Both the position numbers and the translations under genes were made by a program. A DNA stretch of 63,909 nt, the filler included, from Platydemus manokwari (Eukaryota): NCBI GenBank assembly GCA_037951405.1. It is 5 parts of 5 records of this genome, joined end to end, with 100 filler letters (N's around TTAATTAATTAA, not from the genome) between each part and the next. Parts side by side here need not be neighbours in the genome. Positions count along the whole stretch, not along the records: positions 54,910 to 63,909 come from JBBMOY011316205.1; 4 more parts are not named here. One strand, given 5' to 3'. The notes beneath the pieces were generated by a model that worked only from the letters and a program-made list of their open reading frames with translations, searched no databases and had not been told where the DNA came from. Shown piece after piece: positions 54,910-63,909 of this stretch; positions within the stretch are counted from its first letter, which is position 1; every line of letters starts with the position of its first letter.

Positions 54910-55499
54910 TAGATTGTTTGGAGGTAAATTTGTATATTTGCGATTAATAAATCATTTACAAGTGTTTTGTCATTAATATTCAACATTTATATAGGGGTTA
55001 TAGATACCAGTAACAATAATTTTATATCTAAGTAGCAATATTTATAGCTTGTCGTTTATAATTTTTATAAATATTCCTTTGAAGTTTTAATAATACTTAA
55101 AATCAACGACTATGGTATTAAAAGTAGATAATATGGATACAATAGGATTAATTGAGATTGATTTTTACATAAATTATAATTTGTATCATTATTGTCACAG
55201 TTATTGTCTTCATACAATACAGTTGTGAGAGGCTAAAAATAAATACAATGGGGTGAATTATGCCGATGTCCTCAATAAGAACTCTAATTGACTGGTTAAG
55301 ATACAAGAATTAATAAGTGAAATAAAATCGATATTGTTAGATAATAATAAACGACATAATCTCAAAATTTAATAATTTTGTCTAGAGTAAAAAGTTCATA
55401 TAGAGAACTGATAAGGCTGCTCAGACATTCTCAAAGAATTACTCTCTAAATTTGAAACCATTTAATATTCATAAACGAGTTATGATTGGATGGAAATTC

Positions 55500-56460
55500 T
55501 ATCAACATGAAGCATTATTTACTCACCAATACTGCAGTAACTATTTTATACAAATAAAACATTTTTTTCTCACAGTGTATCTGCTCCAATATGTTGTTCA
55601 ATTATATTTATGTAAATATTTCTTTTGATGTAAATATTTCTTTCTCCTTTACTTTGTTGGTAAAAATCTTCTTTAAGACTTCTAATTCTTTGCATGTTCA
55701 TTATAGAGACAATACTTTCTACATCCAGAAATGACATAAAAATATAGGTGATTAATATAGGTTTATAAAGATATAACTCAGATTCAAAGTTTTTGTTATT
55801 TTTAGATTTCATTCATTCGATTTTCTGCTTCCAACGAGTGAGATTGAATGAAATGCTATGGAATTATAATATAAATTGCAAGATGCTGTTGAGCTAAAGG
55901 AAATAGGCGAATTTTATTGAACAGAATAAAAATTCGATTGCGTTCATTGTTGACAGAATTGGTGAAACAGATGTCAATTTGCACTGATTTATTAAAGAGA
56001 TTATTTAATGGAAGGGGAAGTAAAGAAGTGAAAAATTGGATTACCTCAATTTATTTAGGCAAGTATTTCTTTACAACAAAAAAGCAATGTGACAATGCAT
56101 TAATAATTGTAAGGAAAAATGTTTGAAACTTAGTTGTACAAATAGAACACTGATTAACTTTTTGAACATTATTTATAATTAAGTTTGCATTCTCGAAACT
56201 CAACACATTTGAAAGAATATTCTCTCATAAATCAATGTCGATTATCATTAAATGTCTTATTTCGGGTTCTACAACTTAAAATTTCTCAACAAAACCTTTA
56301 TCCTAACGTAGTCACAATCAAACTTTATTAGATATAAGTAAAATCCACACTTATCATGGGCGATAGACTTCGTTGGAAATATAATGGATTTAACAACTTC
56401 CAATGTTTTGTTTAATTTATCCAAAGTATTTCTAAATTTAAATAACTTGATTCAATATAT
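55500..56460 (-). pseudogene. Degenerate cadherin-like fragment
   Basis: TLDKLNKTLEVVKSIIF...YVRIKVLLRNFKL*NP and VQIDICFTNSVNNE, with in-frame stops and residual splice donors. Confidence 0.3.
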
Positions 56461-57079
56461 AGGATAAATTTGGATTACTACATAAAATATTCTCGAACAG
56501 GTCGTTCTCATAAAAATACTATTTCAAAACTAGCAATGTAAATTAATTCTGGAAATTGAGACAATTCGCTTTATATTTCTTTTCAAAAATTCCTGAAAAT
56601 CTTATTGTTCGATCGTGGTTTATTTTTGCAGATAACAGCGGTTTAGATAAATTCAAATGTATTACTAAATCTTACATCCTAAGATATTAATGTTTTTGGA
56701 TAAAAATTGCGAACATCAATTTCCAAATTTTGAAACAAAAATGTAGAAATTGTGCATTATAATTTCCATACAAATATTTATTGGTACATGTTTATTTAAA
56801 AAGTAATTTGTTTAAGAAAAACATTGTTTGGGTATCGACAATTTTGAAACAACTTTCGATTATAGATGGAATCACAAATTAATTACGACGAATCAATCTT
56901 TTATGCTATATTAAGCACCACAAAATAAAGAATCAGATTCTTCATTTATGCTAGATTATATGATGCTTAACACATATTTCGCATACAACGTAATAATATT
57001 ATGAACATAAAAATATTTATTTAGATTTTGAATGCTAAACAAATTACTATTGAAATTTCTAATATTAACATAAGGATAT

Positions 57080-57503
57080 CTAAAACTTTGGAGTTATATA
57101 AGTCCCTGGGATGTTACTATATCCTTTGAAACAGCCTCTTCCTATTATTTCTCCTGCAAAAAACCAGAATATGACTTCTAAAGTCACGGCTCCATTTATT
57201 AATCCTTCCTAATATTGTTTTAGTATTTTATTTTTAAATACTTATTTTAAATAACCTTCATAGTAAGTTGTTTCCATTTACCAGATTTTGCAGAACATAA
57301 TATTTTAAACAGAGCATCCTTTGCAGCTGGCAGATCACTAATTGAAGGTGGTCTCATTTCAACTTTAGCATAAGAATAAAACGTTTTCAATCTTGGGACA
57401 CCATAATCTAATAAACCTAAATGGAAAAGAATATAAAACTGATTATATAATAATGTACAAAACTTTTTGAAATTACAGGTAACTTCGCAACTAATTTTGC
57501 CAT
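57080..57503 (-). CDS. ATP5MG: Mitochondrial ATP synthase subunit g; exons 57503-57464, 57416-57256, 57208-57080; 109 aa
   Basis: PRLKTFYSYAKVEMRPPS...SGKWKQLTMKEGLINGAVTLEVIFWFFAGEIIGRG..GY. Two 47-nt introns. Absent from the supplied ORF track. Confidence 0.93.
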
Positions 57504-57829
57504 TTTTATGTTTACATAAGTCAGATTAAACAAATTAACCTTGACTTATTTAACTAAATTGCTTGAAACATAATAGTTTTGTAATTTAATAGACAAGATA
57601 AAAGAATAGTTATTGAAATAAAATTGTATTTATTTATAATAAATTTTATCTAATTCTCGTTTTTCAATTAATTTTGTCAAGAATAAATTTTAGGGCTTTC
57701 AACAATCATAATATTTGACTTCAAAATTTTGAAGTTCTCTTTGTACAATTATAATACACTATCGAAAAACTCAAACTTTGATAAATTAAATTAATTATCC
57801 ATTGCTATTTATTATTTAACACACGATTG

Positions 57830-58370
57830 TTATTGACATGTAAATAGTGGACCAGCTCATCGATAGTACAATTTCAACATCGGGCGCTTTTGATAGAATT
57901 CGACTTCAACTAAACTTCATCAACCAAGATTTATCACTCGGTTTTTCTTATGAATAAAATATAATTACTAGTTAAAGTGATGAGTTATTATAATTCATTA
58001 TTGGTATAAAGACCTATACATATTAGAGATTTCTTCAAAAATGACTCAAACCACATTCATTATTGATTATCACAGGAGCAGCATTACAAGGCAACTAGGA
58101 AATATGAAGGAAAATTCAAAAAGCTATGAGCATTCATACGTGTGGATCCAAACAATACCCAGAAAATATTGAAGACTCTCATTTTCAAATTAGTAGGAAA
58201 GCATATGCTTAAAGTGCCGAAGTAAATGTTCCAATGTAAAAATTGTTTTCTTTTGCGTGATTTCATCTTGGATTCATTTCAGCACAAGATAAGGGCCATC
58301 AAATCTAATTGAAATTGCGAAATAGTGAAGGCAATCATTAAGCATACATATCTCATAAATCAGTTTATTT
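57830..58370 (-). pseudogene. Degenerate cadherin-like fragment
   Basis: HYFAISIRFDGPYLVLK*IQDEITQKKTIFTL and NLKMRVFNI. Confidence 0.25.
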
Positions 58371-60083
58371 ATGCCAATTTAAGTGTTGATGATCTGACTG
58401 TTTTTTGTGAACTATTAAAAGTATTGTGGATTATTAACTTTGCGCAGAGAAGAAATTTTAAGTTCTCTTTCTACATCTATAATTTGATAATTTAATGATC
58501 ACATTAATTTACTAATTTAATATTAAATCCCACTTTAATATTAAGCCCCACTTTGAAATTCCAATAATCCATTTGCGTGGTGCACTGAGCATCGTTGAAA
58601 ACCCTTTGTATTTCTATATAATTTGGAATTGTAATTTTCGATTATTCTTAAAATATAATTTATATCACATTGCAATAGTTCTTCTTGAAATAGCTACAAA
58701 TTACAAGCGTGCACATATATTAATCATACAGCTACTCATTGTAATTTAGATAAATCTTAGATTGAACCCTAACTATTAATTAAATTTGTTCAATTATTAT
58801 TACCTAGTTTATATTAAGTCTAATCGTATTTAGTGCTTTATTATAAAATTTAAAATTAAAAGAAACCTTTAGATAATTGTTCGTCCATAGTATGGTCCTC
58901 AATACTTACTATCGAATCCATTGGGTAACATAAAGTCAAGAACCAAAACTAATTTAAGACATGTTTAATACATTTTGCCAAGTATGCTGTATTGTGAACA
59001 TCATTAACGGCAGAATTGGAACTTGATAGGACTGCCACTTATGTTGATTCTCGGTAATTTGTTGTTATTTGTTCTTTTCAATGCAAATAGCAAATATTGT
59101 CATCATAATTCTGTTTATTTCCTTTTTAATTATTTTTTCTGTGGGGATTTTTTAAATATTTTAAAAGGTATTAATTTTTTTAAATAATTGTTTTTAAATT
59201 TGTACTTTGATGGCGTTTGTTTTCAATGTGTACTATCTATTGTGATTGTTCATTTATATTTAAACTATTTTTATCATTTCTTAAAGAGTCTTCGGAATAA
59301 GATATAAATTACGTAAAAACACTGCGATCTTAAAAACCTGAAATTTAAATCCAAACAAAACCAAACAATATTTGTCTTATAGAGTTTTTCAAATTTTATC
59401 CAGTTGATGTAGTTTTCATAAATTTATTACGCAATTGAATTTTTCTTGGATCATCTCAGTAAAGTGTATTTATTTTGCTGTTTAGAACGGTGGTATTTTG
59501 AGAATTGATTAAAGAATTCAAATTTTACTAACTACTAGGTAATAAACACAAAAGGAAAAAAGACTACTTGAATAGCCGATGAATCAAATAAATGAAAAAT
59601 CTAATCATCGTTGTTTTGAGTTTTCTCTAAGATCGTGAAAATTTTTAATTAGACAAAAAATTATCGTGTTAAACATATTTTTCGTTTTGTGATTAGTTTA
59701 ATTTTAAAATTTTGTTATTTTTTAATGAATTTTTTTTATACTAAACTAATTTTTATTATTTTAATTGATTTTTATGATTGTCTATATTATATTTGATAAC
59801 GCAACAGCATCATATTTCTTAAAAATGTTTTCTAAGATATTTTATAATGCTATTTAATATATGATAAAACACGAAAAAATAAAATTATAATATATTTTAA
59901 CTGATTATTTTGGACTTTTGAAAGAACAAATGAAACACTACTCGAGTAGTCATTAAATCAAATTAACATGTTGAACTTTCAATTGAATTCCAATAAGGAA
60001 AATAAAAACTGAAAATTAGATAAATTTGAAATAAATTTCGAATGATAAGATTTTAAATTGTCTTGATTTCATTCTTATCTTTA

Positions 60084-63000
60084 TCAAGATTTCTCATTAG
60101 AATGTTGGAAATGTTTTTCAAATTTCCTTTTGATTTTATTATTATTGGAAAACAGTTGATAGGAATCAGCAGTCTTTTCAGAATGAATTGGTAAACATTT
60201 TGTTTCGAATTCAGGTTCTTTACTGATGTAAGAAATTAATGATCGATCATATGTTGGTTTATGGGTTATAGTACTACTTACAGAATGCAACTTGCTGTTA
60301 AAAGATGAATAAAGCTGCATATATGAAATAAAAGATTTTGAATCCTCATTTTCATGAGAAATAAATGAATCATTATTAGTGTTTTCCTGATGTACTTCTT
60401 GATGTCTTTCGGTCTTGGTATTTTTACTATCAATCGATCTTAAAACATTAGAATCACTGGAAAATTCCATACACGCTTTTGATTGTTGATTGAAATTAAC
60501 TTGATTAAAATTACTGGTTGAGGCATGTCTGATAATTTCATTACTGGAATATATACCATAATCATTTGCATCTGTCATATTATGATGATCGAATTTTGTA
60601 TTGGATAATTTAAAAGTCGGAACAGAGGAAACTACCAATTTTGAACTCTGAGATTTCAAAATCGGTAATTTTTTGCTGAAACATTTTCTAAGCTTTTTTG
60701 AACGTTGGGAATTTGATGCTTGATCCAAGCAGAAATCATTAGTTTTACATTTCCGTAGTTTTTGTGATGATATGTGTATCGGTTGTAATTTATTGATTAA
60801 ACTTTTTGGACCTATATCATTATTATTATATTCTGTTGATAGTGACTCATTATCCAGAAATAATTGAACTTTGTTGGTGAGCGTATTGGATGAACTTTGA
60901 CAGTTTTGATTGTCTTGTAGATGCTTGATGAGAGAATAATTTTCATCCTTTGACATTTTAATATCCTCAGCCGATTGGCAATTTCTTAATGGAGACTTAG
61001 AAGATTTGGTTCCAACAAATTTCATTGAATTACCAAAATGTTTTTCAAGGAAATCTGAACTGTTAGATATATGTTTTGATTTCCTTTGATCATGAGGTAT
61101 TTGAGAAGTAGAAGACTTCTTTAATTTCAGCGAACCATAATTAGTTGATGAATTCTTGGCAGTGACTAGTGATGGTTTAATACTTGTCGGTTTTGATTTG
61201 AGCTGCAAAGTGAATTTTGTCTTATGGAATTTGCAATCTTTAGGCTGCTTTAACAAATTTTGTACTACTTCAACAGATGGAGACTTATTCTCGAGAGTTC
61301 TATCTTCAATTACTACCGGTGACGAAGCCAAGCGTTTACATTCAAGTTTCACCGGTTCTTCGACTTCCGTAACGGTTGAATAAAGAAGAGAATTCATAGA
61401 CAATTTTTCAGACGGATTCAAACTTCTACGCAAGGCCAATGACTCTGCAACGGTATCTGTATCTATAGGAAATGTCAGATTGGCATTCATGCTTAAATGT
61501 TTTATCTTTGATTCGTGAAGACTTGGAGCTGTTTGTAAACCGCAATTCATTGTTTTCGACGGAAATATATGAGGTTCACCAACTGAAGTAATTTTAAGCA
61601 ACTTATAATCGTTGGAGAGATTATCTTTAAATGAATCCGGTGATTCAATTAAATTGTAAATCGATTCCAGTGACGTTCCAAATACTGACTTTGATGATAT
61701 TTTCTCATCGTAAAACAGAGAATTGTTAGATTTTTGAAATGACTCATCTGGTTTTTCAAATATTTCATCGGAATTGGAAACCAAATCTTTCATATCCAAG
61801 CAATTTAATGGATTGGTGTGAAAGGAATTTCCATTCAAAATTATTGTTTCATCCGATTTGTTGGACTTATTTTTCAATTCAAAAATCTCATGATTTTCTT
61901 TCAATGTCGATTCGGAATTAGTGGGAGAAAACTGATCTAAATTATCGCCAACGATATCACAGCTATCACAATGTTTCAATTTTAATAAAGACTTTTTCTG
62001 TTCTAAATTATTGAAAAGAACTCGATTTTCATCATGTAGCGAACTCGGTCGATTATCAATGAACGATGAATTAGAATTGATATCAGCCACTTTGTGAATT
62101 TCAGGTACACTTTTATAATGGTCAACATTTGTATCCCAGTGGATGATTTGTTGGCCCTTTTGATCCACTAATGAATGAATATGATTTAATTTCTCATCAA
62201 GATTCAGAGATAATAAATTTCTCATTGTGCTTGAATTATGTTCATTTGATGTAGTAGGCTCAAGACGTTCATTCTGCGAGTTGGCAGTTAAGCCTGATAA
62301 CAGTTTGTAGTTCATTTCTGGTTGAATTATTTGGCGATAATCAGAATTTGATAAATCCTGCCATATAAATGGTGATTTTGAATTTGATGCCGATCGTTCA
62401 GTTGTGCCAACAGTACTTTGATCGTTATCATCTTCCTTCGTCTCGGATTCCTTTGTTTCTGTTTTTTTGGTCTCAATAGTTGGCGGAGGATTTTGTTTTT
62501 TCGTTGCTTCGTTCGTGATATTCGATGTATTTTCACCGGCTTCTTCATAATCTTTAACAAGAGCACTGATGTTGTACAGAGCTTCTGTGAATTCACATTC
62601 TTCCATACCTTCACCAACAAACCAATGAACGAAAGATCTCTTCGAATATAGTAAATAAAATCGATGCGTTAAGCGTTGCCATGCTTGACCAATTGCTGAT
62701 GTGTTTGTTAACATGGCAACATTTTCTTTCGTTCTTGCAAATTTAGAATCTGGAATAATAACAGGAGAAACAGCATTGATTCCTACTTTGAAACCCGTAG
62801 GACACCAATCAACGAATTCAATGCTGTGATCACGCTTGATTTCACTCAAAGCCATATAAACATGATGGGGGCAAATGTTTCCTCGGAAAAATAGAGCACA
62901 AGACATAAATTTCCCATAGAAATGGTCGACTTTCATCATTTGATTGCTTCTATCGAATACAAGTCTAGTTAAATCCTGCACAGATAAATCCTGATGGGAT

Positions 63001-63613
63001 GCTCTTTCTTCACTCATAAGTGGGGCAAAATTACATAAAGGAAAATGAATTCTAGGATAAGGAACCATATTGGTTTGAAGAACTGATAAGTCACAATTTA
63101 GAACATTTACAAACCGTACTGAAGCGGTAACCGACGAAACAACTTGAGCTATCATGCGATTTATTGTATTATAAGTTGGATAATTGAGTGATAAAAATTT
63201 AGCTGAAATTTCGAACATGGCTTCATTATCCAATAGAAGACCAACATCGATATCTTCCATGCAAAAATGCTCACCTAAAAGACAATTGTAAGGTTCAACC
63301 ATTGACGTTGATAGTGTGGGAGAAGGATAAATTGGTATTTCAATTTTTGGTGTTTTGGGATAATCAGAAAGACCTTCAAACATAGCTGACGTGAGTCCAG
63401 CACCAGTACCTCCACCAAGAGATCTTATAATCAATATTCCTTGAACCATGTCACATTGCTCAAATAAATGGCGAGACTGTTCATTTATTTTTGCCAGTAA
63501 TAATTTACCAACAGTGAAAAATCCACGAGAAAAATTATTGGCAGCATCTTCAGGTCCACTAATAAGTCTATCAGGATGAAACAATGATCTGAACATTCCT
63601 TTTCTGATCTCAT
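60084..63613 (-). CDS. Divergent alpha-tubulin with a ~815-aa C-terminal extension; last exon only (5' exons lie beyond the window)
   Basis: DEIRKGMFRSLFHP, EDAANN, GGGTGAG, VEPYN, LDNEA, QTNMVPYPRIHF, FVDWCPTGFKVGIN, KRSFVHWFVGEGMEE and KDYEEAG. Acceptor CAG at 63614-63616. Confidence 0.93.
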
Positions 63614-63909
63614 CTGTTTGAAAGATTTAATAATATTAAATCATATAACTTATTATATTGCCCTTGTACGAAACTTTATTTATTGAGGTTTCGCAGCTTA
63701 TATTGTATTGATATTTGATAGATTTTGTGTTGCATTAACTTATAAAGTTTTTTAATATATTAAAAATTATTCTTAAAATATTTTTATTATAATAAAATAA
63801 ATTAATAATTGCTATAAAACTTTAAAAAAAATTAATATTAATCGCAAATTTTATACTACTAATGTTCTCATAATATAATATGATGGAAAATTGAACTAAA
63901 TAATTTACC

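Follow-up and report, generated by a model that had tools for sequence, protein, structure and literature searches.

The window analysed here is a stretch of 63,909 nucleotides of Platydemus manokwari DNA (assembly GCA_037951405.1), composed of five parts joined end to end, and the gene of interest lies in the last of these, the piece at positions 54910-63909 (JBBMOY011316205.1). The piece is very AT-rich, its GC content rising from 0.20-0.30 in the sequence around the gene to 0.30-0.38 within it. Its only long open reading frame (ORF; minus strand, 63596-60084, 1170 aa) belongs to a single coding exon that holds alpha-tubulin residues 76 to ~440, an 810-aa tail and a TGA stop at 60084-60086, which is directly followed by TAA to give a double stop (60081-60086). 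The features of the locus are collected in Table 1. On the minus strand, the splice acceptor context reads TTTCAAACAG before the exon boundary and ATGAGATC after it, and the frame runs upstream of the first in-frame ATG as far as the AT that follows TTTCAAACAG. The exon thus starts at ~63613, and the intron is in phase 1, within the D76 codon (TUBA1 numbering). All homolog alignments end at this boundary (63614-63626) and no N-terminal match is found anywhere in the piece, indicating that residues 1-75, with the T1 and K40 loops, are encoded beyond its edge. The intron in codon 76 is retained, at a conserved position shared with TUBA1A and TUBA1B, and for this reason a processed retrocopy was rejected.

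Table 1. Features of the alpha-tubulin-like gene in the piece at 54910-63909
Feature	Position	Strand	Basis
Single long coding exon	60084-63613	minus	ORF list, frame statistics, 3' sequence
3' end of intron, AT-rich, GC 0.24	63614-63909	minus	acceptor AG at 63615-63614
Tubulin/FtsZ GTPase domain (PF00091), C-terminal two thirds	63204-63581	minus	ORF residues 6-131
T4 signature loop GGGTGAG (S147A)	63396-63416	minus	codon check
T7 loop and helix H8, TUBA 244-259, FVNVLNCDLSVLQTNM	63066-63113	minus	alignment, codon check, AlphaFold
Codon GTT (Val) at the catalytic Glu254 position	63081-63083	minus	codon check, DNA contigs identical
Tubulin C-terminal domain (PF03953)	62667-63056	minus	ORF residues 181-310
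Helices H11-H12 to DYEE (62541-62552)	62532-62666	minus	alignment; H12 R422L and D424N family-wide
Tail after DYEE, Ser/Lys/Asn-rich, near neutral	60087-62531	minus	frame statistics, composition

The 5 kb downstream of the gene (54910-60083; GC 0.20-0.30) contains two trivial short tandem repeats (58516-58554 and 59715-59779), no ORF of more than 80 aa and no Rfam match, and appears to be non-coding. No AATAAA is present in the 300 bases after the stop codon, and neither an additional 3' exon nor a C-terminal motif characteristic of related tubulins (clade B, below) was found in the remainder of the piece. Contigs of a DNA run reproduce the window with 0 differences over 59900-62619 and 62600-63857, the Val254 codon included, but the assembly was probably built from this run, the sole public one with the locus, and the identity is thus not independent support. 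There is no RNA run among the public runs holding the locus, the sole run not being on record as RNA. Within the coding stretch for GEGMEE and H11' (62590-62629), two very short contigs with a depth of ~29-33, as compared to 14, break the assembly graph of the DNA run. This double-depth stretch of 31-38 bases suggests a sequence common to another locus, probably a paralogous tubulin gene in the same genome.

The exon encodes an alpha-type tubulin, and not a beta- or gamma-tubulin. Residues 83-439 can be aligned with solved alpha-tubulins (E ~1e-127 for TUBA1B) with one 1-residue gap near position 159, the identity to TUBA1A and TUBA1B being 52-57% over this range, and both Pfam domains score above their curated cut-offs (PF00091, E 4.5e-27; PF03953, E 2.3e-37). 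The best 60 sequence matches and the best 50 fold matches are all alpha-tubulins or tubulin-complex chains, at 50-52% identity. The alpha-specific S9-S10 insertion is of full length, with K352 kept in KVGIN (62775-62789), and the nucleotide-contact motifs AANNF (63531-63545), DNEA (63219-63230) and YNTINR (63156-63173) are preserved. For the non-exchangeable site, the piece includes T3, T4 (with S147A), T5, N206, Y224 and N228, while T1 and E71 fall in the upstream exon; the full-length relatives keep GQ(A/C)G and (V/I)DLE. An AlphaFold model based on a 35-sequence alignment (mean pLDDT 84) matches alpha chains with a TM-score of 0.89-0.90 and an rmsd of 1.4-1.7 A, and positions Val254 in helix H8 (model residues 176-183). 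All secondary-structure elements of the alpha-tubulin fold are present, and the correspondence with TUBA1A and TUBA1B extends, element by element, to the fold, the insertion, the nucleotide-contact motifs and K352.

The departures from the canonical sequence are found at functionally significant positions. ORF residue 172 corresponds to TUBA residue 254, and here the codon specifies Val in place of the catalytic Glu. The initial annotation had reported this Val, Val and Asn in place of D245 and G246, and a GGGTGAG signature where GGGTGSG is expected, all of which are borne out by a codon-by-codon reading (Val245 at 63108-63110, Asn246 at 63105-63107); alignment to the solved alpha-tubulins and to TUBA numbering likewise places no Glu at 254. 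It had also described the protein as lacking the GxxNxD synergy loop, and this is correct only in part: D245V, G246N and A247V alter the T7 loop in addition to E254V in H8, but the loop is not missing, is of canonical length, and retains N249 and D251, with the GxxNxD signature altered at G246 alone. Q256, T257 and N258 are also unchanged. The number of acidic residues in the T7-H8 segment falls from three to one, and no member of the family described below has an acidic residue at 253 or 255. Together with S147A in T4, the one-residue deletion near 159, R422L and D424N in H12, and the C-terminal tail, these substitutions distinguish the protein from TUBA1A and TUBA1B.

The same change at position 254 is found in other flatworms. 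An exhaustive search recovered close relatives that share it, including P0121 and P0122, the former being 84-85% identical over the domain. A family profile search added named members from Echinococcus granulosus, Hymenolepis diminuta, Fasciolopsis buski, Calicophoron daubneyi, Clonorchis sinensis, Paragonimus and Protopolystoma, so that the subfamily consists of cestodes, trematodes, a monogenean and AT-rich relatives. The nearest atlas cluster is mostly Platyhelminthes, and named NCBI and UniRef proteins do not exceed 65% identity, though annotated proteins of parasitic flatworms are among the matches. With canonical alpha-tubulins as the root, a maximum-likelihood tree pairs the P. manokwari sequence with P0121 (support 100/100) within clade W (96/93), which lies outside the well-supported parasitic-flatworm clade of cestodes, trematodes and a monogenean (clade N, 100/99). 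Taken together, the atlas cluster, the identity to named proteins and this tree position point, with moderate confidence, to a flatworm from outside the sampled parasitic groups, perhaps a free-living triclad. These two clades, a third clade (B, 100/99) and two single rows join at 91/80, which is moderate support; a tree of 124 rows has a 9-row clade with a local support of 96. Val occupies position 254 in 14 of 14 members of W and N, the two closest clades, and Glu is kept in the four canonical alpha-tubulins of the outgroup, a distribution showing that E254V is not a chance change.

Other positions have changed along with residue 254. Across the family, 23 positions are fixed in at least 90% of members and differ from canonical alpha-tubulin, and the shared derived residues, which are also those of the P. 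manokwari protein, include a hydrophobic residue at 254, N or S at 246, Y103F, H139R, F141L, R422L and D424N. Clades W and N together have 14 members, of which 12 carry S147A and two, P0286 and P0288, keep Ser. N249 and D251 are invariant across the family. Within-family conservation is 0.98 for T4, 0.88 for T3 and 0.81 for H8, and the lateral and longitudinal elements (M-loop, H2-S3, H8-S7 and S9) are of canonical length with a conservation of 0.6-0.96.

The paralogs of clade B (P0092, P0130, P0283, P0124, P0270 and P0144, from loci L001, L002 and L006) resemble clade W in being without Glu254, with Ile, Val or Ala in its place, and have a one-residue deletion after position 255. Their tails are long and variable and all end in a conserved SLMEELIRIT-like motif that resembles a short C-terminal binding element; this motif is absent from the P. 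manokwari tail and from the 5 kb downstream. Among divergent alpha-like representatives (137 rows), residue 254 is Val in 18, mostly from the Val254 family, Asp in 14, Gln in 8, Ile in 3 and Ala in 3. For instance, the P0169 cluster, which includes Fasciolopsis buski KAA0189647.1, has Gln254 and represents a second type of alpha-like tubulin without the catalytic Glu in a trematode, a paralog different from clade W. Several further divergent alpha-like sequences, listed in UniParc only, have Gln, His or Gly as residue 254, and their accession numbers are near those of family members. A broader radiation of alpha-like genes without Glu254 may thus exist in flatworms. In the case of P0084 (1765 aa), an unrelated N-terminal protein with several other Pfam domains is joined to an Echinococcus-type Val254 alpha-tubulin, an arrangement that most likely stems from the merging of gene models as opposed to a genuine fusion. 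The contigs of run SRR33002330 range in GC3 from 0.36 to 0.64, and one locus (L004) ends in a string resembling a sequencing adaptor; the run may hold more than one organism, and with such a range across one run's contigs, origin from the same sample was rejected as proof of paralogy.

Selection was assessed with Logan contigs of relatives that have an uninterrupted coding sequence, and the values refer to these relatives and not to the P. manokwari copy. For the domain, dN/dS is 0.083/1.39 (~0.06) and 0.129/1.32 (~0.10), ratios that are rough because dS is greater than 1 and that indicate strong purifying selection on the domain in these relatives. For the tail, the same contig comparison gives 0.39/0.84 (~0.46) and 0.56/1.38 (~0.40). 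The P. manokwari copy has 1 of 79 family-invariant positions broken, similar to its relatives, and a short end branch (0.05). Judged from these sequence comparisons, the replacement of Glu254 is ancient and under purifying selection, which favours a function for the protein and disfavours decay.

After DYEE, a long tail takes the place of the acidic, tyrosinated C-terminal tail of canonical alpha-tubulins. The last 810 codons contain 0 stops, as compared to 42-104 stops in each of the other five frames, and the GC3 of the DNA in which the 1170-codon frame is open is 26%. The corresponding residues (ORF 361-1170) are 15% Ser, 10.5% Lys and 9.6% Asn with a net charge of +3, the first half being mildly acidic and a basic stretch occupying ORF residues 761-1010, and the C-terminus is NEKS, with no terminal Tyr or Phe. 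No homolog of the tail was found among 7631 candidates, an atlas feature search with the tail gave a best score of 0.76, which is below noise, and the sole Pfam match, to CtIP_N, is sub-threshold. Single-sequence AlphaFold prediction shows no domain (mean pLDDT 32.5). One SQIP motif (61095-61106) lies in a basic, Ser-rich context, but since one such SxIP-type motif is expected by chance, it was not accepted as an EB-binding site.

In trematode and cestode orthologs, the protein stops 8-40 residues past DYEE and the acidic, Glu-rich hook is missing as well, and the trait of the family is thus the loss of the canonical tail. Other relatives have tails of 170-530 residues, continuous with the domain within one contig or gene model, and even the tail of P0121 is barely alignable to that of P. 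manokwari. The 810-aa tail is a lineage-specific addition. The giant tail noted in the initial annotation is therefore genuine as an uninterrupted reading frame, but is not a feature of the family.

Glu254 of alpha-tubulin had been taken by the initial annotation as the residue that triggers GTP hydrolysis in the adjacent beta-tubulin, and this role is supported, as the human mutants E254A, E254N and E254Q block hydrolysis and form stable GTP microtubules that bind EB proteins with high affinity (PMC7018511, PMC8764682, PMC11893814). The engineered mutants also show lattice or growth abnormalities that are specific to each mutation (PMC11893814). The natural flatworm protein, known from its sequence, resembles the mutants in having lost the catalytic carboxylate of residue 254 (7sj9_A, the solved chain with the best score, itself has Ala there), and differs in that the mutants are single substitutions in a canonical isotype, whereas the flatworm protein has many co-evolved changes.

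A requirement for any effect on the lattice is pairing with beta-tubulin. A predicted complex of beta-tubulin with the full-length relative P0286, which is 69% identical to the P. manokwari protein, has an ipSAE of 0.76, the best control being 0.00; 51 of 78 solved complexes pass the mark used for this score, as do 2 of 108 mismatched pairs, and the score, which may reflect memory of solved dimers, shows likeness to such dimers and not binding. At least 97% of contacts are common to the runs, the partner pLDDT is at least 83, and the interface is the canonical intradimer face, with T3, T5 and H11' of alpha against T7, H8 and H10 of beta. Because the longitudinal, lateral and nucleotide-binding elements are all conserved, it is probable that the Val254 protein would pair with beta-tubulin as a normal heterodimer and enter the lattice through a preserved longitudinal surface (N249, D251, Q256-N258 and K352). 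Without the Glu254 carboxylate, hydrolysis of the GTP on the beta-tubulin beneath would not be activated, and given the behaviour of the human mutants and the lack of an acidic residue at 253 or 255, a Val254 subunit should leave this GTP unhydrolysed. By analogy, we infer that GTPase activation has been lost. Each incorporated subunit would then fix the GTP state at one longitudinal interface, and the polymer would be stabilised in proportion to the subunit dose. In addition, loss of the acidic tyrosinated hook, together with R422L and D424N, would alter how the surface is read by motors, MAPs and tail-modifying enzymes. In the lineage of P. manokwari, a long disordered projection would replace the hook, and the basic second half of this projection could space or cross-link microtubules as a MAP does, although any such projection or cross-linking role for the tail is speculative.

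The divergent gene itself is real, and the interpretation in the initial annotation of such a GAP-dead protein as a dedicated microtubule stabiliser, cap or seed is plausible by analogy. We lean, by a little, towards the reading that the exon is part of an intact and selected gene for a divergent alpha-tubulin isotype, one that belongs to a flatworm-specific subfamily and would stabilise the lattice into which it is incorporated. It is possible, though doubtful, that the consequences extend further, and that flatworms use naturally hydrolysis-dead alpha-tubulins to build permanent GTP-state, non-dynamic microtubules in one cell type (for instance, the cortical microtubules of sperm, cilia or tegument). 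The P. manokwari protein would in that case be a tubulin-MAP fusion, with an 810-residue projection that spaces or cross-links microtubules and excludes the usual tail-reading enzymes and motors.

An alternative, which we consider unlikely, is that the protein binds beta-tubulin but is not a lattice subunit, working instead as a terminator or cap, as a sequestering partner, or as a scaffold mainly through its tail. The T7 loop is changed at 245-247 besides residue 254, and remodelling at these three further positions could weaken longitudinal contacts; R422 and D424 on the H12 surface are changed family-wide; and the predicted complex covers the intradimer face only. The huge tail could also sterically hinder lattice closure, and a lattice rich in subunits that each carry 810 extra residues might be unable to close. 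The conservation and canonical length of the M-loop, H2-S3, H8-S7 and S9 argue for incorporation nonetheless, and, as most orthologs are without a long tail, the function of the family cannot depend on one.

Very unlikely in our estimation is that hydrolysis is retained or slowed, through D251 or a co-evolved beta partner, and that the isotype differs from others in its tail and H12 surface (that is, in the tubulin code) and not in dynamics. The invariance of D251 and N249 is consistent with this, as D251 may support residual or altered chemistry, and the recurrence of residues other than Glu at 254 in many divergent alpha-like tubulins may indicate that residue 254 matters less in some settings. 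Against this stand the hydrolysis deficiency of all three human mutants, E254A, N and Q (PMC7018511, PMC8764682, PMC11893814), and the loss of acidic residues from T7-H8, with none at 253 or 255 in any family member. Equally improbable is that the copy is unexpressed or a young pseudogene, or that the tail is spliced out of the protein, for although no RNA run was found, no clear AATAAA lies near the stop and the tail is fast-evolving and without homologs, the 1170-codon frame is open at a low GC3 where the other frames are full of stops, the family-invariant positions are largely intact on a short end branch, and the shorter tails of relatives are joined to the domain.

The preferred reading, that of a selected isotype that would stabilise the lattice, has one published parallel. 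The coccidian alpha3-tubulin (Toxoplasma TGME49_231400, with counterparts in Hammondia, Neospora, Besnoitia and Cystoisospora) is without D251 and E254, has a long, fast-evolving tail with little sequence shared between species, is barely expressed in the standard stage, and has been proposed as an isotype for non-dynamic microtubules or, alternatively, as a gene in decay (PMC10056924). Both are natural alpha isotypes without the canonical GAP glutamate and with an unusually long C-terminal tail. They differ in that D251 is kept in the flatworm protein and lost in the coccidian one, residue 254 is Val as opposed to His or Gln, and the tail of 810 aa in P. manokwari is far longer than the ~40-48 residues called exceptional in coccidians; the flatworm family is also older and more widely conserved, with an independent origin in an animal phylum. 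Common descent was rejected, given the retention of D251 and the grouping of the P. manokwari sequence with flatworms (the MPREI N-terminus of alpha3 falls outside the piece available here), and the resemblance is functional and convergent only. With coccidian alpha3 and the frequent absence of Glu254 in divergent alpha-like sequences, the concept of an alpha-tubulin without Glu254 is not new. The searchable literature yielded no flatworm alpha-tubulin without E254, and neither the Val254 animal family, its breadth and constraint, nor a tail of this size was found there; a paper on bdelloid alpha-tubulin was set aside as a precedent because it does not concern residue 254.

Dynamic instability rests on the GTP hydrolysis that alpha-Glu254 triggers, and hydrolysis-dead microtubules have so far been studied mainly by way of engineered human mutants. 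An animal isotype that has long been without Glu254, and has co-evolved around its loss, would be a natural reagent for the GTP lattice, and would test whether cells tune microtubule stability through isotype dosage. The family is present in parasites of humans and livestock, including Echinococcus, Clonorchis, Paragonimus and Fasciolopsis, whose tubulins are drug targets. In flatworms, the Val254 protein may represent a natural building block for unusually stable microtubules, and the isotype would provide a marker for an unknown class of such microtubules.
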